Shown in pieces: positions 7,610-26,151 of a stretch of DNA of 64,000 nt; position 1 is the stretch's first letter, and each line of letters starts with the position of its first letter. The translations under genes and the position numbers were made by a program. The notes beneath the pieces were generated by a model. It had not been told where the DNA came from, searched no databases, and saw nothing but the letters and a program-made list of their open reading frames with translations. The stretch is taken from assembly GCA_020891255.1 (NCBI GenBank), contig BQFW01000001.1, forward strand, positions 1,178,001 to 1,242,000, in the 5' to 3' direction. Source of the stretch: Entomortierella parvispora E1425 (lineage: Eukaryota; Fungi; Mortierellomycota).

Positions 7610-8205
7610 AGCCCAATGTTTATGATTGAGAGGAGGCCGACTAACTGGTCCTTGCTGAGTTTGCTGAATCTGGAATGGTCGCGAAAACTGCTCTTGCTGG
7701 CGCTGCTGCTGCTGCGAAAGTTGCAGCTACTGCAGGTTCAAGAGTTGCATCGATTGGCGGTGACGCTCTTCCCGATGTTGTTGCTAAGGTGGAACCACAG
7801 TGAGGAGAGGTGACGATTGCTGGACGTGATGCTGAGATGCTGTGATTGAATAAAACTCTGACGATCTCGGAACTTGGACTCTAGGATCCACATCCGCAGC
7901 TTTCGCTCTCGAGGGGATAGGGTGCTTGATTCCAGAACTGAAGCTGCACCTGCCTTGAGTACGTTGTTGATTGACAGACATGACCCTCTCTCCGTCTGCT
8001 CCCACTCGTTCGTTCGGGTTCCCTCCATGAGCTGTGAATGACTGGGATGTGGCAGAATGTGGCAGATACTCGCCATGTCTGCCTCTCTTGCTTAAGAAAT
8101 TCGTCCCTCATCGTCATGATCTACGGTTTGGGACTGGCGTACTTGGATCCAAGAGCGCAATCTCTAGATCTGTAGAAAATGGAGGGTTTTCTCCGTCAGA
8201 AATTC
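7610..8205 (-). pseudogene. K4: remnant of Kelch-receptor cytoplasmic tail (copy A)
   Basis: Frame-broken matches to family motifs: SRDCALGSKY..MRDEFLKQERQTWR, KAGAASVLESSTLSPRERKLRMWILESKFRDRQSFIQ, QQGPVSRPPLNH. No TM or propeller lies upstream. Confidence 0.75.
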
Positions 8206-11279: not shown

Positions 11280-11905
11280 TCAGAGCCAAAGGCTATGATT
11301 ACGAGGAGGCGGACTGACTGGTCAATGTTGAGCCTGCTGAACCTGCTGAGCCTGCTGAATCTGCTGAGCCTGCTGAATCTGTAATGGTTCCGAAAACTGC
11401 TCTTGGTGGCGCTACTGCTGATGCGAAAGTTGCAGCAACTGCAGGTTCAAGAGTTGCATCGATTGGTGGTGACGCTCTTCCTAATTTGTTGCTGAGGTAG
11501 AACCAGAGGGAGGAGAGGTGACGATTGCTGGACGTGATGCTGAGATGCTGTGATTGAATAAAACTCTGACGATCCCGGAACTTGGACTCTAGGATCTACA
11601 ACAGCAGCTTCCACTCTCGAGGGGATAGGGTGCTTGATTCCAGAACCGAAGCTGCACCTGCCTTGAGTACGTTGTTGATTGACAGACATGACCCTCCTTC
11701 CATCTGCTCCCACTCGTTCGTTCGGGTTCCCTCCATGAGCTGTGAATGACTGGGATGTGGCAGAATGTGGCAGATACTCGCCATGTCTACCTCTCTTGCT
11801 TAAGAAATTCGTCCCTCATCGTCATGATCTACGGTTTGGGACTGGCGTACTTGGATCCAAGAGCGCAATCTCTAGATCTGTAGAAATGGAGGTTCCTCTC
11901 CGTCA
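11280..11905 (-). pseudogene. K5: remnant of Kelch-receptor cytoplasmic tail (copy B)
   Basis: Near-copy of 7610-8205: KAGAASVLESSTLSPREWKLLL and QQAQH*PVSPPPRNH. Confidence 0.75.
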
Positions 11906-13301
11906 GTAATTCGCCTGAACGTTACTTCAAGCACTGAACAAAATGGTTTAGGGTGGCCATGTGGAAAATACGAACGAGGGCGTCGAACGAGGGCGCGTCG
12001 AGATGGTGCGAGCGATGGATATGGATCTGGTACGATATGAGTGCGTCAGTCCAAGGACGGAGGGAAAGGGCGGGTGCAAGCAACGGGGATGGTGGATAAA
12101 GGGGAGCTTGAGGGTAGAGAGGGAAACGACAAAGGAACTGGAGATCTTGCGGTCTCAAGAAGCGGGCCAATGTTGAAGCGAGGACCTCACGAAAAAAAAG
12201 TTATTATGGGAGATGTGACCATGGATCCCGACAGTCTGAAGCGAGAATGTTTATCGGGGAGTAGGAAAATTATCAGTGGAAGCGACGAGGGCACTGATGG
12301 ACGAGTGCCCAAAGGCGGGACCAGAAGTTGCCTTCGTTCTATTTCTATCAACAAAAAACAAGAGATATTTAGATTCTCCGAGGACTAAAGTTCAGAAAAC
12401 CAGCCGATGAGTGATGACACGTTCACAAGCAGCGTCTCGTCCATGCACCCTTGATGTCAACACTGAACAGAACCCCATAGTGTTGAAGATGGCCTACACC
12501 AAAGTGTTGGATTTAGCGAAAAGGGTACATCCACTTTCTCTTAATTTTGCCGCTTTCTAAGGGCTCCGGATCCAAGCGTACGAAGCTTGAAAAGACCAAT
12601 AGAGCTCAGGACGTCGCCGCGGATCGTGAAGTCGCCCACAGAAGTAATCAGCAATTAAATACCAACTCCTACTCAGTCTGTGGGCGGAGAAGGAGGAGTA
12701 GGAGGAGGAGGAGGAGGAAAGACGGGGATTGGAGTGGCGGCGGCAGTGGTGCAAATCTGCCAGCATCATCAAAAATAACTCTAGCAAAGGATTGTACTAA
12801 AAGTCAAAAGGGATGCCGAAAAAGCAAGGGCCGGCACAAATGGGGGCAGAGAAAAGTAAGGGAAGAGAAGATGCAAAGATCCATGGCAGGGACAAATGGG
12901 GCAGAGAAAAGCAAGGGGAGAGAAGAGCCTGGGAAGCAAAAAAACCAAAAATAATGAGGATGGTGGCCGTAAGAGAAAAGACTGCAGAATATCTAAGAGG
13001 CACCGATCTAGGAGTGGTTAGCCCCTCCTCCTTCTTGTTTCGCCAACTTTCGGCAAGTTCGGATTGGCTGTGAAGATGGTGATGCAGAGAAAACAGAGAA
13101 ACACGACGGATGGGTTGAAAAAAGGGGCGAGCACCCGGGAAAACAGAGAAACGAAAAAATATGGCGCAGAAAAGATGAGGCCACAAGCTCCACAGTGGTT
13201 TTCTCTCCTGGTTTTCCTCGTTCATGTCCTCCCCCGAATTTCCTCTAGTTTCTTTGCATGGCCGATCGATTTGTGTAGTTTCATTTTCGACCCTATTCAC
13301 G

Positions 13302-14675: not shown

Positions 14676-16945
14676 TTACAAAAGATATTGCTCTTGTTGA
14701 AATTGCTGCTTTTGCAGAAAATGTTGCTCTTGCAAGTGCATCAGCTGCATCGACTGTCGGTGCTGGTCGCCCTGATGTTGTTGTGGAGGAGAGGTCACCG
14801 GAGAGAGGGGTGTCGACCATTGCTGGCCTTGATACTCAGCTGGAGCCTGGCATTGGTGAGCTGGAGCCTGGCCCTGGTACTGGGATGAAGATTGGAAAGG
14901 GGAAGGGTTGATGGCAACAGCCAATGGTGCCCCGGTGCCAAAACTGTTCCGGGCCACACCAGAAGAGTTTAGCGACTGTCGGAAGAGGGCCGACTCTCGT
15001 GCGTTCTGACTCTCTGCTTGGATAAAACTCTGACGTTCTCGGAAACCTGCCTCTAAGATTTGCAATTGACGCTCGCGCTCTTTAGGGGAAATGGCTATTG
15101 CCTCCAGAGCAGCTGCTGCACCAGCCCTGAATGCATCGGCCGGATCGATGGATGAAGCTGCCTTCTCCATCGAAATCTGATCGTATGGGCTACCGCCAGG
15201 GGACATGTACCCCTGGGATGTGGTTGAGCCGCGCCACTTCTGTCTCTCTTGTTCAAGGAACTCGGCCCTCATGGGAATGGTCTCGGAGTTGAGACTATTG
15301 TATCGGGATCTTTTTTCGTAAGAAGAGAGAGTCTCATCCCCATCTTGATCCCCCATGCTGGACCATGCTCTTGATTGGCAGTAGAAACAGAACCCAGCAG
15401 CCACGGCTGACAATAACAAGATCGCTCCTGCAGCACCGCCACCGATGATGGCAAGTTGGTTGTGAGAGCCATCTTTGATATCACTGTTCATATCCAGGTT
15501 TCCGTTCATCGCGGGGGTGGATGTACCAGTTCCAGCACTACTCGCACTGGTGGCTGCGTTGGTGGTTTTGGTGGACGTGTCAGGCCAGGTCGGTTTGTAC
15601 TGATCCACGAATGTGTTTGTCTTGAGGTCGAAAAGGAGAATGGGAGGCGAATTTGTATCCACGCCATTGGAGCCTCCCCAATTGATTAACGTATCGTTAA
15701 CTATCGCACATGCACTTCCAATTCGAGGCTGAGGGGCAGAAGGACCCTGGGTCCAGGACATCGTAGGCACGTCCAAGATCCATAGATCGCTCAACATCGA
15801 ACCTGCTCCTTTGGGACCGTATAACCGTCCTCCCAATACAACCACCTTTGTTCCATCTTCAGCTGATGTCATGAATAAAGAGAGAAGACATGGGACCAGA
15901 GTTAAACAACTGACGCAAAAACACATCTTCACGAATCGCATCGAAGGCAATATTGGACTCACTAGAAGCCATGCAGTGATCTATTCTATGACTTGGTCCG
16001 TGTCCTTGTTGTTTCAACTGGTTTTTTTTTTTAAAAAAAAAAGAAAAGAAAAGTTGGCATCCTATGCTCTCCCCACAAGAAAAAAGGTGTCCAGATTGTA
16101 CTTACCAGCGTCCTCCAGGCATTGCTTGCGGGAACGAACTCTGCCAGCGCAGATGATCCTGCTCTCACAGGGACGCTCAAATACAGAAGGCTCCTCCGGT
16201 AAGCAGAATAGACAGCCGAATACCATGGAGAAGTCACAGGCGTAGGAATGGTCGAAACACCCACAATGTTATTTTTGGCGATATCATAGGTGTACACATG
16301 CTGCACTGCACTTTCGCCTTTCTGGAATTCCGCCAGGTACACCACTCCTGTCTCTCGATCTTGGGCTGCTCTGTAGCTGGTGTTCAACAGGCTGCTCGGC
16401 CCAGACGCGGCCATTGTCCAAGTTTGGCCGGCTAACGTGTATTGGAAGCCAAGTGTTTGAGATCTATCCTGAAACCCTCCAAACGTGTTAAGATATTTTC
16501 CATCCAACGAGATGGTTAAAGATCCCCCACGAAAACTGTAAAGATTGATCTCTTCGTTTAGATATCTCGGCGGTCCGATATTAGTCCAGGCTGGTTGGCT
16601 AACATTCCAGGCAGCGGTGAGGTCCAAGGCTATGAACTGATTGATCGGTGTAGCAGCTGTTACCCTACTTGCGCCGTCTGGAACCACTATTTTTGCTCCT
16701 CCCAGAATGAAAAACTGTGTCTTAGAAGTTACAGAAAGGGCTCCAAACGTTGTAACATACAAGTTTGTTGCCGGTGGAGACTGTGCAGTAACCAAGACGT
16801 CGAACGAAGATATCATCAGCATGATGGCAACAATGAACCAAACACAGGATGCGGGTGGACGATCCTGATGGCCTCTGCAGGCTGTTTTTCTTTCCCAGAT
16901 CAGTGGGAATTGTGTACCCGGTAAGGTATTATCAAAGGTCCCCAT
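14676..16945 (-). CDS. K6: Kelch membrane-protein paralogue with nonsense-truncated C-terminus (~693 aa)
   Basis: Exons 16945-16106, 16017-15963 (55 nt) and 15862-14676; 2082 nt in frame. TAA at 14676-78 and again at 14661-63 precede the still-readable ancestral end ...SPPPVNYNTRP*(14604). Confidence 0.8.
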
Positions 16946-17540: not shown

Positions 17541-19046
17541 TTACAAGGGTCGAGTGTTATAATTGAGGGGAGGAGGGGGACTAACCAGTCCGTGCTGGGC
17601 TTGTTGGACCTGCAATTGCTGCAAAAGATGTTGTTCTTGTTGTCGTTGCTGTTGCTGCAGAAGCTGTTGCTCTTGCAAGTGCATCAGTTGCATCGACTGT
17701 CGGTGCTGGTCGCCCTGATGCTGTTGTGGAAGAGAGGTCGCTGGGGAGAGGGGTATCGACCATCGCTGGCCTTGGTACTGAGCTTGAGCCTGGCCTTGGT
17801 GAGCTGGAGCCTGGCCCTGGTACTGGGATGAAGACTGGAAAGAGGAAGGGTTGATGGCAACAGCCAATGGTGCCCCTGTGCCAAAACTGTTCCGCGCCAC
17901 ACCAGAAGAGTTCAAGGACTGTCGGAAGAGGGCCGACTCTCGTTCGTTCTGACTCTCTGCTTGAATAAAACTCTGACGTTCTCGGAAACCTGCCTCTAAG
18001 ATCTGCAATTGAAGCTCGCGCTCTCGAGGGGAAATGGCAATTGCCTCCAGAGCCGCCGCAGCGCCAGCCTTGAACGCGTCGGCCGGGTCGATGGATGAGG
18101 CTGTCTTCTCCATCGACATCCGATCGTATGGGCTACCACCGGAGGACATGTACCCCTGGGGTGTGGTCGAGCCGCGCCACTTCTGTCTCTCTTGTTCAAG
18201 GAACTCGGCTCTCATAGGAATGGTCTCGGAGTTGAGACTATTGTATCGGGATCTTTTTTCGTAGGAAGAGAGAGTCTCATCCCCATCTTGATCCCCGGTG
18301 CTGGACCATTCTCTTGATTGAAAGGCAGGCCTGCGTGTGCGTGTTCGCTTTCGTCGGTAGAAAAAGAACCCAGCACCCGCGGCTGACAATAGCAAGACAG
18401 CTCCTGCGGCACCGCCACCGATGATTGCAGTTTGGTTGTTTGAGCTGTCTTTGACATCACTGCTCATGTCCAGGTTTCCGCTCATCGTGGGGGTGGGCGT
18501 AACAGTTCCAGTACTGCTCGTACTGGTGGCTGCGCTGGTGGTTTTGGTGGACGTGTCAGGCCAGGTCGGTTTGTACTGATCCACGAATGTGTTTGTCTTG
18601 AGGTCGAAAAGGAGGATGGGAAGCGACTCCGCAGGAACACCATTGAAGCCTCCCCAATTGATCAACGTATCGTTAACTATAGTACAGGCACTCCCGTATC
18701 GAGGCTCTGGGGCAGGAGGGCCTTGCGTCCAGGACATAGAGGGAACGTCTAAGATCCATAGCTCGTTTGTATACGTTGCATCTATTGAGTTGATAGTGGG
18801 CAGTCCCCCGCCAAATACAACGACCTTTGTTCCATCTTCGTCTGATGTCAGGAAGCAAAAGCATATCCGTAGGAGTAGAGTTAGTCTATTGGTAACAGAA
18901 CGCCTTGCATGCATCGTCTTGACATAGCGATAGACTCACTGGATGCCACGCACGGGTAGACTTTGGCACTTGGTCCACCTTCTTGTACCGACTGGATATT
19001 TGTATAAAAGGAATAAAAGGTATTTAACCGTCTGTGCTCTTTTCAC

Positions 19047-19084
<38 letters not shown>

Positions 19085-19986
19085 AGAAAAAAAAATAAGG
19101 TCGAAGGAGCAAAGACTCTGCTTACCAGACTTGCCCAGGCATTACTCGTGGGAATGTATTCTGTCAGCACTAACGGGGTTGGTGTCTGATACTGAGTAGC
19201 ACCCAAATACAGAAAGCTCTTCCTGTATGCCGAGTAGACAACTGAACACAGCGGATTTATCATTGTCGACGAAAGTCCATGTGGTGTTGACACGACTGGG
19301 ATCAGCCAACCATCTGTGATGTTATTCTTTGCGATGTCAAAAGAATACATGTACTGCGTGAAATTCGCGTCTCCATTGAGCTCAGCTACGTACACTAGTC
19401 CCGTTTCTGGATCTTGGGCTGCTCTGAAAGTAGGATCAGACATGAAGTTTGTCTCCGCTGGCGACATAGTCCAAGTTTTATCGGCAAACGTGTATTGAAG
19501 GCTGATTGGAGATTCGGGTCCTGCATCTGTTAACCCTCCGAACGTATTGATATGTTTTCCGTCCAATGAGACGGCCAGCAAGCCGTCGATTAGGAGGATC
19601 TCGTGGCCTAGGTATCTAGGCGGAACAATATCAGCCCAGATTGGTTGGGTGGCATTCCAAGGAACGGTGAGGTCCAAGGCTATAAACTGATTGATCGGTG
19701 TAGACTCTGGGTGGCCATTTTTGTCCATAGAGACAGTAACTCCACCAAGGATGAAAAACTGTGTCTTTGAAGCTGTGGTCAAGGGTGCAGCTGTCACCAC
19801 ATACGGGGTTGCTGGTAGGGACTGTGCAGAAGCTGAGGTGCTGAATGACACTAGTATCAAGGTGCCGACAAGTAGCCACAAAAGACAAGCTGCGAAAGAA
19901 TCGTTTCGACGACCATTGTGAGCTGTTGTTCTTTCCGGGACCCGTGGGAACCGTGCCCCTGATAAGGTGTTTCCGAAGGTGCCCAT
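17541..19986 (-). CDS. K7: Kelch single-pass membrane protein (intact, ~737 aa)
   Basis: Exons 19986-19126, 18991-18940 and 18841-17541; 2214 nt in frame. Signal ...TLILVSFSTSASA-Q, TM IIGGGAAGAVLLLSAAGAGFFFY-RRKR, end PPPPLNYNTRPL. Confidence 0.9.
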
Positions 19987-20621
19987 TTCAAGTACAGGAG
20001 TCGTTCTTCGAATTCCTTGTCAATACTCTCTAATGCGAGGAGGAGCTGGTGCCGTCGGGTATAGGCAGAGGCACACTTGGAGGGAGGAAGTAAAGTGGGC
20101 GAGATGGCAAGGGGGGAAAGGTCTCAAAACAGCGATGGAATGGAGTGAAAAAGAAAAAGGAGATTTGCCAGTCCAGCAGAGTGAAGAAGCTGTCTTGGCC
20201 CAGGCCTTCCTCTCTCATTCCCTGACTGTAGTCATGTCCTGTTTGGTTTCTTTTGCACTGAACACGAAGCCGTTGAGCACAGAGAGTTTGTGCTGCTGTG
20301 CAACCTGGGATTTCTTTTGTGTTTTTTTTTCTTCGACTTTTTGAGCACAATCTCTGTTGCTTGCATGCCTCAATCACTTGAGGTACCTACATGTATCTTC
20401 TTCTCACCATGATGCCATCCAGTGGACGACGACAATGAACACAAGCTCTGAAAGAAATATACGTACAGTACAGTACAGTATATACAGTATAGAGCCGCTC
20501 ATGCGTTTGGTTTTTCGTATCAATAGCTCTGCTTGAAGTCTCACAGATAATGCATGAAAGACACTTCCATCCTACGACAGGAAATATTCTTTATTTACTT
20601 TTCATCGTGAAGATTCTGTCC

Positions 20622-22103
20622 CTAGGGTCGGGTGTTATAGTTGAGGGGGGGAGGGGGACTGGCCAGTCCTTGCTGAGCTTGCTGAACCTGTAATTGATGC
20701 AAAAGATGTTGTTCTTGCTGTTGTTGCTGTTGCTGCAGAAGCTGTTGCTCTTGCAAGTGCATCAGTTGCATCGACTGTCGGTGCTGGTCGCCCTGAAGCT
20801 GTTGTGGAAGAGAGGTCGCTGGAGAGAGGGGTGTCGACCATTGCTGGCCTTGGTACTGAGCTGGAGCCTGGCCCTGGTACTGGGATGAAGACTGGAAAGG
20901 GGAAGGGTTGATGGCAACAGCCAATGGTGCCCCTGTGCCAAAACTGTTCCGCGCCACACCAGAAGAGTTCAAGGACTGTCGGAAGAGGGCCGACTCTCGT
21001 TCGTTCTGACTCTCTGCTTGAATAAAACTCTGACGTTCTCGGAAACCTGCCTCTAAGATCTGCAATTGAAGCTCGCGCTCTCGAGGGGAAATGGCAATTG
21101 CCTCCAGAGCCGCCGCAGCGCCAGCCTTGAACGCGTCGGCCGGGTCGATGGATGAGGCTGTCTTCTCCATCGACATCCGATCGTATGGGCTACCACCGGA
21201 GGACATGTACCCCTGGGGTGTGGTCGAGCCGCGCCACTTCTGTCTCTCTTGTTCAAGGAACTCGGCTCTCATAGGAATGGTCTCGGAGTTGAGACTATTG
21301 TATCGGGATCTTTTTTCGTAGGAAGAGAGAGTCTCATCCCCATCTTGATCCCCGGTGCTGGACCATTCTCTTGATTGAAAGGCAGGCCTGCGTGTGCGTG
21401 TTCGCTTTCGTCGGTAGAAAAAGAACCCAGCACCCGCGGCTGACAATAGCAAGACAGCTCCTGCGGCACCGCCACCGATGATTGCAGTTTGGTTGTTTGA
21501 GCTGTCTTTGACATCACTGCTCATGTCCAGGTTTCCGCTCATCGTGGGGGTGGGCGTAACAGTTCCAGTACTGCTCGTACTGGTGGCTGCGCTGGTGGTT
21601 TTGGTGGACGTGTCAGGCCAGGTCGGTTTGTACTGATCCACGAATGTGTTTGTCTTGAGGTCGAAAAGGAGGATGGGAAGCGACTCCGCAGGAACACCAT
21701 TGAAGCCTCCCCAATTGATCAACGTATCGTTAACTATAGTACAGGCACTCCCGTATCGAGGCTCTGGGGCAGGAGGGCCTTGCGTCCAGGACATAGAGGG
21801 AACGTCTAAGATCCATAGCTCGTTTGTATACGTTGCATCTATTGAGTTGATAGTGGGCAGTCCCCCGCCAAATACAACGACCTTTGTTCCATCTTCGTCT
21901 GATGTCAGGAAGCAAAAGCATATCCGTAGGAGTAGAGTTAGTCTATTGGTAACAGAACGCCTTGCATGCATCGTCTTGACATAGCGATAGACTCACTGGA
22001 TGCCACGCACGGGTAGACTTTGGCACTTGGTCCACCTTCTTGTACCGACTGGATATTTGTATAAAAGGAATAAAAGGTATTTAACCGTCTGTGCTCTTTT
22101 CAC

Positions 22104-22141
<38 letters not shown>

Positions 22142-23051
22142 AGAAAAAAAATAAGGTCGAAGGAGCAAAGACTCTGCTTACCAGACTTGCCCAGGTACCG
22201 CTCGCGGGAATGTATTCTGTCAGCACTAACGGGGTTGGTGTCTGATACTGAGTAGCACCCAAATACAGAAAGCTTTTCCTGTATGCCGAGTGGACAACTG
22301 AACACCCCGGATTTATCATTGTCGACGAAAGTCCATGTGGTGTTGACACGACTGGGATCATCGATGCATCTGCAATAATGTTATTCTTTGGGATATCAAA
22401 AGAATACATGTACTGCACAACACTCGCGTTTCCATTGAGCTCAGCTACGTACACTAGCCCCGTCGCTGGATCTTGGACTGATATGAAAGTAGCATTAGGT
22501 ATGGCGCTTGCCTCCGCTGGCGACATAATCCAAGTTTTATCGGCAAACGTGTATTGAAGGCTGAATGGATATGTGGGTCCTTCGTCTCTAAACCCTCCAA
22601 ATGCATTGATATGTTTTCCGTCGAACGAGACGGCGAGCGAGCCGCCGTTTCCATTGGCTAGGAAGAGCTCTTGGTTTTGGTATCTAGGCGGACCAATATT
22701 AGTCCAGACTGGCTGGCTGGCATTCCAAGGAACGGTGAGATCCAAGGTGATAAACTGATCGATTGGTGATTGTTGGTTGCCATTTTTTTCCGGAGAGAAA
22801 ACAACTCCACCCAGGATGAAAAACTGTGTCTTTGAAGCTGTAGACAAGGCTCCAGCTGTCACCACATACGGGGTTGTTGGTAGAGACTGTGCAGAAGCTG
22901 AGGTAGTGAATGACACTAGTATCAAGGTGCTGACAAGTAGCCACAAAAGACAAGCTGCGAAAGAATCGTTTCGACGGCCATTGTGAGCTGTTGTTCTTTC
23001 CGGGACCCGTGGGAACCGTGCCCCTGAAAAGGTGTTTCTGAAGGTGCCCAT
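20622..23051 (-). CDS. K8: Kelch single-pass membrane protein (intact, ~732 aa)
   Basis: Exons 23051-22182, 22048-21997 and 21898-20622; 2199 nt in frame. Exon 3 is almost identical to that of K7. Confidence 0.9.
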
Positions 23052-23709
23052 TTCTTGTACAGGAGTCGTTCCTCGAATTCAGGCCTTGTCAATACTCTCT
23101 GATGCGAGGAGGAGCTGGTGCCGTCGGTTATAGGCAGAGGCACACTTGGAGGGAGGAAGTAAAGTGGGCGAGATGGCAAGGGGGGAAAGGTCTCAAAACA
23201 GCGATGGAATGGAGTGAAAAAGAAAAAGGAGATTTGCCAGTCCAGCAGAGTGAAGAAGCTGTCTTGGCCCAGGCCTTCCTCTCTCATTCCCTGACTGTAG
23301 TCATGTCCTGTTTGGTTTCTTTTGCACTGAACACGAAGCCGTTGAGCACAGAGAGTTTGTGCTGCTGTGCAACCTGGGATTTCTTTTGTGTTTTTTTTTC
23401 TTCGACTTTTTGAGCACAATCTCTGTTGCTTGCATGCTTCAATCACTTGAGGTACCTACATGTATCTTCTTCTCACCATGATGCCATCCAGTGGACGACG
23501 ACAATGAACACAAGCTCTGAAAGAAGTACACGTATGTAAAGTACAGTACAGTACTGTACAGTACAGTACAACAGTATAGAGCCGCTCGTGCGTTTGGTTT
23601 TTCGAATCAATAACTCTGCTTGAAGTCTCACAGATAATGCATGAAAGACACTTCCATCCTACGACAGGAAATATTCTTTATTTTACTTTTCATCGTGAAG
23701 ATTCTGTCC

Positions 23710-26151
23710 TTAGGGTCGGGTGTTATAGTTGAGGGGGGGAGGGGGACTGGCCAGTCCTTGCTGAGCTTGCTGAACCTGTAATTGATGCAAAAGATGTTGT
23801 TCTTGCTGTTGTTGCTGTTGCTGCAAAAGCTGTTGCTCTTGCAAGTGCATCAGTTGCATCGACTGTCGGTGCTGGTCGCCCTGATGCTGTTGTGGAAGAG
23901 AGGTCACTGGAGAGAGGGGTGTCGACCATCGCTGGCCTTGGTACTGAGCTTGAGCCTGGCCTTGGTGAGCTGGAGCCTGGCCCTGGTGCTGGGATGAAGA
24001 CTTGAAAGGGGAAGGGTTGATGGCAACAGCCAATGGTGCCCCTGTGCCAAAACTGTTCCGGGTCACACCAGAAGAGTTTAGCGACTGTCGGAAGAGGGCC
24101 GACTCTCGTGCGTTCTGACTCTCTGCCTGAATAAAACTCTGACGCTCTCGGAAACCTGCCTCTAAGATCTGCAATTGAAGCTCGCGCTCTCGAGGGGAAA
24201 TGGCACTTGCCTCCAGAGCAGCCGCAGCGCCAGCCTTGAACGCGTCGGCCGGATCGATGGATGAGGCTGTCTTCTTCACCGACATCCGATCGTATGGGCT
24301 ACCGCCCTGGGATATGTACCCCTGGGATGTGGTTGAGCCTCGCCACTTCTGTCTCTCTTGTTCAAGGAACTCGGCCCTCATGGGAATGGTCTCGGAGTTG
24401 AAACTAGCGTATCTGGCTCTTTTTTCGTAGGAAGAGAGAGCCTCATCCCCATCGTGATCCCCGGTACTGGACCATTCTCTTGATTGAAACAGAGGCCTGC
24501 GTCTGCGTGTTCGCTTTCGTCGGTAGAAAAAGAATCCGGCACCTGCGGCTGACAATAACAAGACAGCTCCTGCGGCGCCGCCGCCGATGATTGTAGTTTG
24601 GTTGTTTGGGCTGTCTTTGTTGTCGCTGTTCATGTCCAGATTTCCGCTCATCGTGGGGGTGGATGTAGCAGTTTCAGTACTGCCCGCACTGGTGACTGCG
24701 CTGGTGGTTTTGGTGGACGTGTCAGGCCAGGTCGGCTTGTACTGATCCACGAATGTGTTTGTCTTGAGGTCGAAAAGTAGGATGGGAAGCGACTCCGTAG
24801 CAACACCATTGAAGCCTCCCCAATTGATCAACGTATCGTTAACTATAGTACAGGCACTTCCGAATCGAGGCTCAGGGGCAGGAGGGCCTCGCCTCCAGGA
24901 CATTGAGGTAACATCCAAGATCCATAGCTCATTTGTAAAAACTGGGCGTGATGCGTTGATATGGAGCAGTCGCCCGCCAAATAAGACGATCTTTGTTCCA
25001 TCTTCGTCTGACGTCATGAAGCAAAAAGAATATCCGTAGGAGTAGAGTTAGTCAATTGGTAACAGAACGTCTTACAGTCTCGTCTTGACATAGCGATAGA
25101 CTCACTGGATGCCATGCATGAGGCGGTCCTGGCACTTGGTCCACTTCCTTGTATCAACTGGATATTTGTAATAAAAGAAATAAAAGTAAGCACCAGTGAT
25201 CTTTCCATCAAAAAAAAAAAGGAAAAAAAAAAAAGAGAGAGAAAAAAATAAGGTCGAACGAGCAAAGACTCTGCTTACCAGACTTGCCCAGGTATCACTC
25301 GCGGGAATGTATTCTGTCAGCACCAATGGACGTGGTGTCGTAAGCAGAGTAGTATCCAAATACAGAAAACTCTTCCTGTGTGCCGTGTAGACAACTGAAC
25401 ACTCCGGATTTATCATTGTCGATGAAAGTCCCTGTGGTGTTGACGATGGGATCATCAAAACAGCTGCGATGTTATTCTTTGCGATATCAAAAGAATACAT
25501 GTCCTGTGTGAATCTCCCCCACGCGTCCCAACCGAACTGAGCTACGTACGCTAGCCCTGTCGCTGGATCTTGGACCGCTGTGAAAGCACCAATTGGTACG
25601 GTGCTTGCCTTGGTTGGCGACAAAGTCCAAGTTTTATCAGCAAACGTGTATTGAAAGCTCGTTGAATTTAAGGGTCCTACTCTTCCTAACCCTCCAAATG
25701 CATTGATATGTTTTCCGTCCAACGAGACGACCAGCGAGCCGGGGATTTGCCTAAGCAGGACAAGCTCTTGGTTTTGGTATCTAGGTGGACCAATATTAGT
25801 CCAGACTGGTTGGCTGGCGTTCCAGGGAAGAGTGAGGTCCAAGGCGATAAACTGATTGATCGGTGTAGGCTCTAGGTAGCCATTTTTATCCATAGAGAAA
25901 GCAAATCCACCCAGGATGAAAAACTGTGTCTTTGAAGCTGTAGACAAGGGTACAGCTGTCACCACATACGGGGTTGTTGGAAGAGACTGTGCAGAAGCTG
26001 AGGCGCTGAATGACACTAGTATCAAGGTGCTGACAAGTAGCCACGAAAGATAGGCTGCGAGAGAATCGTTTCGACGGCCATTGTGAGCTGTTGTTCTTTC
26101 CGGGACTCGTGGGAACCGTGCCCCTGAAAAGGTGTTTCTGAAGGTGCCCAT
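23710..26151 (-). CDS. K9: Kelch single-pass membrane protein (intact, ~740 aa)
   Basis: Exons 26151-25279, 25157-25106 and 25007-23710; 2223 nt in frame. Same architecture as K7 and K8. Confidence 0.9.

Follow-up and report, generated by a model that had tools for sequence, protein, structure and literature searches.

The window analysed here is a stretch of 64,000 nucleotides (64 kb) from contig BQFW01000001.1 of the soil fungus Entomortierella parvispora E1425, and all positions given below refer to it. It carries a tandem array of genes for Kelch-type proteins, in which the neighbouring paralogues K7, K8 and K9 (EMPS_00318, EMPS_00319 and EMPS_00320), all on the minus strand, are near-identical in some parts and strongly divergent in others (Table 1). 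Each of the three genes consists of a first exon of 861-873 nt, a micro-exon of 52 nt and a third exon of ~1.3 kb, and each of them retains an intact frame of more than 730 codons. With the translation of K7 exon 3 as query, eight E. parvispora proteins were retrieved, EMPS_00314 to EMPS_00321 (K6 being EMPS_00317), all of them encoded on one contig, and tblastn detected at least nine family members or remnants within the window. A search of a set of 5.8 billion proteins with the ectodomain returned identities above 46% only for the array's own members; unannotated genomic fragments lay outside this search. When the repeat unit was compared with the window by blastn, no patch above 85% identity was found outside K6-K9, and a metagenome search for alleles or close relatives found none.

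Table 1. Coordinates of the genes, variable blocks and shared tracts in the K6-K9 region, in positions of the window (aa, amino acids; dS, synonymous divergence; TM, transmembrane).
Feature	Identifier	Position	Strand	Remarks
K7	EMPS_00318	17541..19986	-	737 aa; exons 19986-19126, 18991-18940 (52-nt micro-exon) and 18841-17541; spliced translation equals the database protein exactly
K8	EMPS_00319	20622..23051	-	732 aa; exons 23051-22182, 22048-21997 and 21898-20622; translation equals the database protein exactly
K9	EMPS_00320	23710..26151	-	740 aa; exons 26151-25279, 25157-25106 and 25007-23710; translation equals the database protein exactly
K6	EMPS_00317	14676..16945	-	Outgroup paralogue; tail homogenised with K7-K9, dS of the ectodomain block saturated
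K7 variable block		19306..19791	-	Codons 66-227, Kelch blades 1-3
K7 fast loops		19746-19687 (B1-C1); 19626-19585 (D1-A2); 19536-19501 (B2-C2); 19464-19429 (D2-A3); 19380-19354 (B3-C3)	-	
K8 variable block		22362..22856	-	Blades 1-3
K9 variable block		25456..25956	-	Blades 1-3
Zero-difference tract, K7 side		17844..19094	-	Equals K8 20901-22151; intron 1 after the poly-T run, micro-exon, intron 2, about three quarters of exon 3
K8-to-K7 junction		20060..20812	-	K8 3' end, intergenic DNA, K7 promoter; contains the 321-bp tract 20060-20368 = 23129-23437

An earlier note on this DNA, made from the letters and open reading frames alone, had described K7 and K8 as essentially identical in intron 2, the micro-exon, most of exon 3 and the promoter, with a hypervariable segment of exon 1 lying between these flanks. 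We aligned the four repeat units (K6-K9) with MAFFT and examined sliding identity and identical runs, which confirmed a variable block between identical tracts of K7 and K8. The two genes show no difference over a tract of 1,261 bp, which codes for blades 5-6 of the propeller, the stalk, the transmembrane (TM) segment and most of the tail, and none over 321 bp of the promoter, where identity remains at 99% out to ~20424. The ~970 bp between the zero-difference tracts contain 100 substitutions and 20 gap columns in 997 alignment columns. Identity drops to 72-88% at 19300-19800, with its minimum of 72% near 19600-19650, and the profile across the region of blades 1-2 reads 100, 95, 81, 72, 88, 95 and 100%. 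At the protein level, all three pairs of K7, K8 and K9 are 65-66% identical in the block, and K7 and K8 are 98% identical downstream of exon 1; the divergent peptides and in-frame indels which the note had quoted from the block are present. Near-identical flanks had been claimed for all three genes; this holds for K7 and K8, but not for K9, whose flanks are 75-97% identical to those of K7/K8, save for short tracts common to K8 and K9. These tracts comprise part of the 5' untranslated region (5'UTR) with the N-terminus (23101-23008 = 26201-26108), and the last 115 bp of the coding sequence, continuing downstream (20737-20623 = 23825-23711).

Outside the block, informative sites group only K7 with K8, switching to K8 with K9 at the 3' end. 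The K8-to-K7 junction is 96-100% identical to the K9-to-K8 junction (23900-23130) over ~770 bp, with the exception of a small indel patch. Taken together with the identity of the gene bodies, this indicates that the whole repeat period of ~3.07 kb was near-perfectly duplicated, only the part between the 5'UTR and intron 1 being exempt. Inside the block the pattern is star-like: the three topologies are supported by 42, 39 and 29 informative sites, respectively, and the sites are clustered along the sequence (permutation p=0.012). Near-equal and clustered topologies of this kind point to a star-like age with short exchanged patches. The segmental exchange which had been suggested beforehand is thus visible in the informative sites, both around and inside the block. 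No sign of directed hypermutation was seen in the block differences, neither a C-to-T bias like that of repeat-induced point mutation (RIP) nor an adenine bias like that of diversity-generating retroelements; the spectrum is mixed, with a transition/transversion ratio (kappa) of ~3. Two further local differences were noted. The K7 5'UTR differs from that of K8/K9 (90-93% identity at 20036-20086), and K8 has a private 21-bp in-frame deletion at ~20880-20900 (corresponding to K7 17823-17843), just 3' of the 1,261-bp tract, where the Gln-rich tail repeats a QGQA... motif.

That coding DNA in the block diverges more than neighbouring non-coding DNA had been taken to point to positive selection and/or segmental exchange; as a sign of accelerated coding evolution, this contrast did not survive the examination of synonymous sites. 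By Nei-Gojobori counting (NG86), synonymous divergence (dS) among K7, K8 and K9 in the block is 0.20-0.27 and non-synonymous divergence (dN) 0.19-0.22, which gives a ratio (omega) of 0.82-0.95, while dS of K9 versus K7/K8 outside the block is 0.17-0.22. For K7 and K8, dS is 0.20 in the block, and both dN and dS are 0 over the flanks (blades 5-6, stalk and TM segment). Since block dS is close to the K9 background while flank dS of K7/K8 is zero, the block is older than its flanks rather than faster at silent sites. The contrast between coding and non-coding DNA is due mainly to mosaic ancestry, with young flanks around an older segment left out of the homogenisation. In the block, K7, K8 and K9 are roughly equally distant from one another, and a dS of ~0.2 represents the age of the K7/K8/K9 split. 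The comparison of K6 with K7-K9 gave a dS of 0.20-0.25 in the tail and 1.0-1.2 in the block (0.25 and 1.0, respectively, for K6-K7), which is a deeper instance of this regime. When a kappa of ~3 was allowed for, by maximum likelihood (ML) and YN00, block omega rose to 1.1-1.4.

To place the variable sites on a structure, we used an AlphaFold2 model whose input alignment held 70 sequences out of a family of at least 1,530 proteins. The model is a six-bladed propeller with 24 main strands (predicted local distance difference test score 87.2, predicted template modelling score 0.88). A Foldseek search with it returned, among the top 50 PDB matches, nearly exclusively Kelch propellers or Kelch-based designs (NS1-BP, Keap1, KLHL12, KLHDC2; E 1e-13 to 1e-10); these fold matches are generic Kelch domains and give no pointer to function. 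In Pfam, exon 3 (blades 5-6) matched Kelch_6 with 39.4 bits (cut-off 25.3), Kelch_2 with 25.7 (21.3) and Kelch_4 with 25.2 (21.6), and exon 1 alone (blades 1-4) gave no match above threshold. Only Kelch-type models were found in K7-K9, with no NACHT, NB-ARC, WD40, ANK or TPR domain among the Pfam matches. In the map of exons to blades, the block covers blades 1-3, the remainder of exon 1 is blade 4, the micro-exon supplies the D4-A5 loop and strand A5, and exon 3 starts in blade 5. Kyte-Doolittle hydropathy peaks at residues 30-48 (2.3) and 443-461 (1.8), the second being followed by an RRKRTRTRR run, and the Ser+Thr content of the stalk is 38-42%. Judged by hydropathy and the model, K6-K9 are predicted to begin with a signal or anchor segment, followed by an extracellular Kelch propeller of six blades, a stalk rich in Ser and Thr, a single C-terminal TM helix and a Gln-rich cytoplasmic tail. 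The tails of K7, K8 and K9 end in a ...SPPPPLNYNTRP motif (17541-17700, 20622-20740 and 23710-23830), which is also present in K10, K11 and distant members. The database names K6 and other members of the array galactose oxidase, and the Pfam models Kelch_3 and Kelch_4 ("galactose oxidase central domain") match weakly. The propeller of galactose oxidase has seven blades and a copper site, and the enzyme contains additional domains. The name is unsupported, because the propeller modelled here has six blades, with a stalk and a TM segment; it reflects automatic transfer and not function.

Blades of the four-stranded meander type expose their A-B and C-D loops on one propeller face and their B-C and D-A loops on the other. 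The loops of K7-K9 were assigned to faces by blade topology and DSSP strands. The ligand pocket of Keap1 is built of D-A and B-C loops (PMC12314335). In blades 1-3, variable residues account for 44 of the 67 positions in B-C/D-A loops, 20 of 60 in strands and 6 of 32 in A-B/C-D loops, and every indel of the block falls in a B-C/D-A loop. The changes had been described as clustering in the loops after the Kelch GG motifs, which is correct for the B-C loops but leaves out the D-A loops, which vary too. N-glycosylation sequons have been gained or lost in and beside the variable B-C/D-A loops (K7 N208 and N222; K8 N186 and N208; K9 N162 and N326), and two others, the C1-D1 loop sequon (N110/111) and one of blade 6, have been kept.

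Joint ML estimation gave an omega of 2.3-2.4 for the B-C/D-A loops, significantly above 1 (likelihood ratio test (LRT) statistic 7.5-8.5, p=0.004-0.006, with F3x4, F1x4 or equal codon frequencies). A tree of three taxa has a single topology, and the joint estimate is therefore not misled by recombination. Omega was 0.8-0.9 for the strands and 0.24-0.27 for the opposite-face (A-B/C-D) loops, the latter significantly below 1 (p ~0.01), in line with the conserved scaffold that the earlier note had described. Removal of codons at most three positions from an indel raised loop omega to 3.8 (p=0.0008), and in a parametric bootstrap under omega=1 the observed LRT was reached in 2 of 300 replicates. 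The NG86, LWL85, YN00 and ML methods of Biopython pointed in the same direction, with values of 1.05-4.3 for the loops and 0.33-0.61 for the scaffold. Site models agreed: M2a was preferred to M1a, twice the log-likelihood difference being 9.7 in the block and 19.8 in the exon-1 ectodomain, and ~20% of codons were at an omega of 4-5. For K7 versus K9 in blades 5-6, loop omega was 1.8, which is not significant but shows the same tendency; the variable face may therefore reach past the block, its trace there having been erased between K7 and K8 by homogenisation. The proposal of positive selection on one face of the propeller is thus supported. The opposite outcome, as the earlier note had framed it, was a dN/dS of at most 1 with equally raised dS and variable sites scattered over the structure. 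Its first half is what NG86 gives for the block; the variable sites, by contrast, are not scattered, and the loop class evolves faster than neutral, as a surface facing a changing partner would be expected to.

Expression of the array was assessed with a second read run, which behaves as RNA: its contigs skip exactly both introns of K8 (joints 21898/21997 and 22048/22182) and K9 (25007/25106 and 25157/25279, with one spliced contig of 672 nt), with GT..AG ends on the minus strand, and the micro-exon is therefore used. Over the K8 and K9 blocks these contigs show 0 mismatches, and exon 1 of both genes is covered to a depth of ~15-44. K8 and K9 are transcribed and spliced. Over K7 exon 1 (window 19092-20000) no RNA contig was found, despite the 321 bp of promoter identity between K7 and K8; this suggests that K7 expression is low, a missing contig being no proof of absence.

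Some further features of the array came to light along the way. The database model of K6 (635 aa) omits a 55-nt micro-exon at window 15963-16017 (-), which has AG/GT borders, keeps the frame and codes for a conserved G-P-S...H-C-M-A-S blade segment. The model also starts at a downstream ATG (16822), and an MGTF... start as in K7-K9 is present at 16945 (-); with the micro-exon and this start, K6 has an intact open reading frame of 693 aa. Two isolated remnants of cytoplasmic-tail coding sequence, at window 7840-8147 and 11548-11918 (-), lie between array members without a propeller part, and both are 42-53% identical at the amino-acid level to K7 residues 486-600.

We consider it probable that the pattern reflects regional homogenisation of the array combined with diversifying selection on a recognition surface of the K7-K9 propellers. 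The very repetition that underlies this reading could in principle have been created by the assembly: the E1425 genome, which is accompanied by one RNA library, is a Nanopore assembly polished by means of Nanopolish, Pilon and Illumina reads (PMC8759367), and polishing can homogenise near-identical repeats. Such an artefact, whether in the identity of the flanks or in the divergence of the block, is hardly credible and was rejected, given that contigs from Illumina DNA reads alone reproduce all three blocks with 0 mismatches, at a depth of 67-94, that the tracts shared by K7 and K8 appear as single collapsed contigs at a depth of 140-154, about twice that of the blocks and as for two truly identical copies, and that the RNA contigs agree exactly with the blocks of K8 and K9. 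Intron 1 contains a long poly-T run (window 19037-19100 and 22094-22156) exactly at the 5' edge of the 1,261-bp tract, and contigs break there. Several observations weigh against selection on the loops. Block-wide omega by NG86 is below 1, and one-sided count tests for the loops are weak, being marginal for K7-K8 (p=0.045) and not significant for K7-K9 (p=0.13) and K8-K9 (p=0.44). There are only three informative sequences, all from one strain, and the loop class was set post hoc, after these loops had already been singled out; the face assignment is one of blade topology and DSSP strands, not of measured three-dimensional clustering. Loop codons with two or three differences are frequent (12-23 per pair), so that omega could be inflated by multi-nucleotide mutations or by short patches of imported sequence. 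Branch omega is highest for K7 (1.7, compared with 1.2 for K8 and 1.0 for K9; the differences are not significant), and with no RNA contig on its exon 1, K7 may be poorly expressed and partly relaxed. On the side of homogenisation, the rise in G+C content at third codon positions (GC3) from 0.46-0.49 in the block to 0.54-0.58 in the stalk, TM segment and tail is small, and it is confounded by the Gln-rich composition.

The NG86 ratio, the non-significant loop counts, the multi-difference codons and the missing K7 contig could also be read in neutral terms, with the block as an old unconverted segment under relaxed constraint, the loops drifting neutrally in redundant young paralogues, and an omega above 1 arising from noise, multi-nucleotide mutation or misalignment. 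Such an account would also accommodate a block dS raised no more than that of K9 versus K7/K8 elsewhere, the rather high omega of the strands, and the family alignment, in which conservation of the Kelch propeller is lowest in the B-C and D-A loops. We nevertheless regard it as rather unlikely, because neutrality of the loops is rejected by joint ML and the bootstrap, more strongly so without indel-adjacent codons, M2a fits better than M1a, the opposite-face loops are clearly under purifying selection, the frames have remained intact, and K8 and K9 are transcribed and properly spliced. A different history would make K7 and K8 former alleles of one locus, alike in their flanks, whose exon 1 region alone had diverged deeply under long balancing selection. 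They would have come to lie in tandem when, in a heterozygous meiosis, the 3' end of K9 underwent an unequal crossover with that of the ancestral gene. This has the attraction that a single event would cover the equality of the junctions over ~770 bp, the K9-type 3' end of K8 and the equal bodies of K7 and K8; the peak of divergence around blades 1-2 has the shape expected of a balanced polymorphism eroded by recombination, and a donor for either block was not found in the assembly-derived protein set. However, nested conversion tracts between old paralogues give the same profile, the 5'UTR and N-terminus of K8 are K9-like rather than K7-like, which requires an extra exchange, and the scenario draws on one strain and presupposes outcrossing and heterozygosity at the locus. 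We find it doubtful, and more so than neutral drift.

The array evolves as a mosaic. One very recent event made the two junctions (K9-to-K8 and K8-to-K7) alike, and likewise the bodies of K7 and K8 from intron 1 on, and the half that codes for the TM segment and tail is homogenised even with K6. The recent event was an unequal crossover, regional gene conversion or both. The simplest single event would be an unequal crossover in the 3' ends, by which K8 gained a K9-type 3' end; the ancestry of exon 1 would still have to be a separate one. Homogenisation did not reach the stretch between the 5'UTR and the end of exon 1, and homogenising exchanges into blades 1-3 may have been either blocked by sequence divergence or purged by selection. 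Meanwhile, the signalling half of the protein would be kept uniform by concerted evolution, and the B-C/D-A loops would form a recognition surface under diversifying selection; each paralogue may therefore bind a different ligand or ligand variant. We infer that the locus holds a small repertoire of putative surface receptors, with a diversifying recognition face and a uniform stalk, TM segment and tail. Recognition of microbes or partners, self/non-self recognition and wall sensing are candidate roles.

The division into a homogenised and a diversifying part matches the clustered protocadherins of vertebrates. There, regional gene conversion keeps the 3' part of the variable exons, coding for the membrane-proximal ectodomain, TM and cytoplasmic part, more than 99% alike, synonymous sites included, and the domains EC1-EC3 escape it and are under positive selection that enhances diversity (PMC1852091, with reference to Noonan 2004 and Wu 2005). 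Both systems consist of tandem paralogues for single-pass surface proteins (predicted in our case) with a homogenised 3' part and a diversifying N-terminal ectodomain. In the present family, the corresponding contrast is between a dS of 0-0.25 in the tail and TM segment and 0.2-1.2 in blades 1-3, with a loop omega of 2.4. Unlike the animal protocadherins, the fungal genes encode a Kelch propeller instead of cadherin repeats, and each has its own three exons without shared constant exons; the GC3 signature of conversion is weak here, and there is no hint of homophilic binding or stochastic promoter choice. Among fungi, the HNWD genes for non-self recognition of Podospora anserina, such as het-d and het-e, combine a beta-propeller recognition surface under positive diversifying selection with concerted evolution among family members (PMC1805685). 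The likeness is that of a fungal family in which a propeller surface diversifies while members exchange sequence. HNWD proteins, however, are cytosolic, of the NOD-like receptor type and with WD40 repeats, and exchange acts on the repeats themselves, supplying diversity. In K7-K9 the propeller is of the Kelch type and predicted to be extracytoplasmic, its blades are mutually dissimilar at the DNA level, exchange homogenises the part not involved in recognition, and a RIP-like bias is absent. Neither the protocadherins nor HNWD are related to the K7-K9 family. By fold, the closest comparison is with Keap1 and the KLHL proteins, which share the six-bladed Kelch propeller (Foldseek E ~1e-11 to 1e-13, TM-score 0.6-0.8), and the loop classes that vary here are those of the Keap1 pocket. 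In contrast to these cytosolic BTB-BACK-Kelch adaptors of ubiquitin ligases, with which identity is 11-18%, the present proteins have a predicted extracytoplasmic propeller, a mucin-like stalk and a TM helix, and no BTB domain.

Our findings document, with good support, a familiar evolutionary pattern in a hitherto uncharacterised fungal family; they do not amount to a new mechanism. The regime of a conserved tail and a diversifying head, as in animal protocadherins and plant receptor clusters, would here operate in a fungal family of a different fold. It is tempting to go further and to see in the array a surface system of Mortierellaceae for recognising self and non-self, mates or microbial partners, with the exon-1 block as a balanced, hyper-polymorphic determinant of specificity and K7 and K8 as captured specificity alleles. 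We offer this as a speculation which is probably wrong in this full form; if it were true, the array would function at the cell surface of an early-diverging fungus much as an allorecognition or immune-receptor locus does. We know of no comparable surface recognition system in early-diverging fungi, and our literature search for Kelch-ectodomain receptors in fungi or Mortierella, or for this family, found nothing relevant. To our knowledge, cell-surface recognition in these fungi is almost unexplored, including the ways in which Mortierellaceae sense endobacteria, neighbours and mates. The locus offers a concrete candidate in this field: an expressed, lineage-specific array of Kelch-ectodomain membrane proteins, with a putative ligand face that bears an evolutionary signature of the recognition type.

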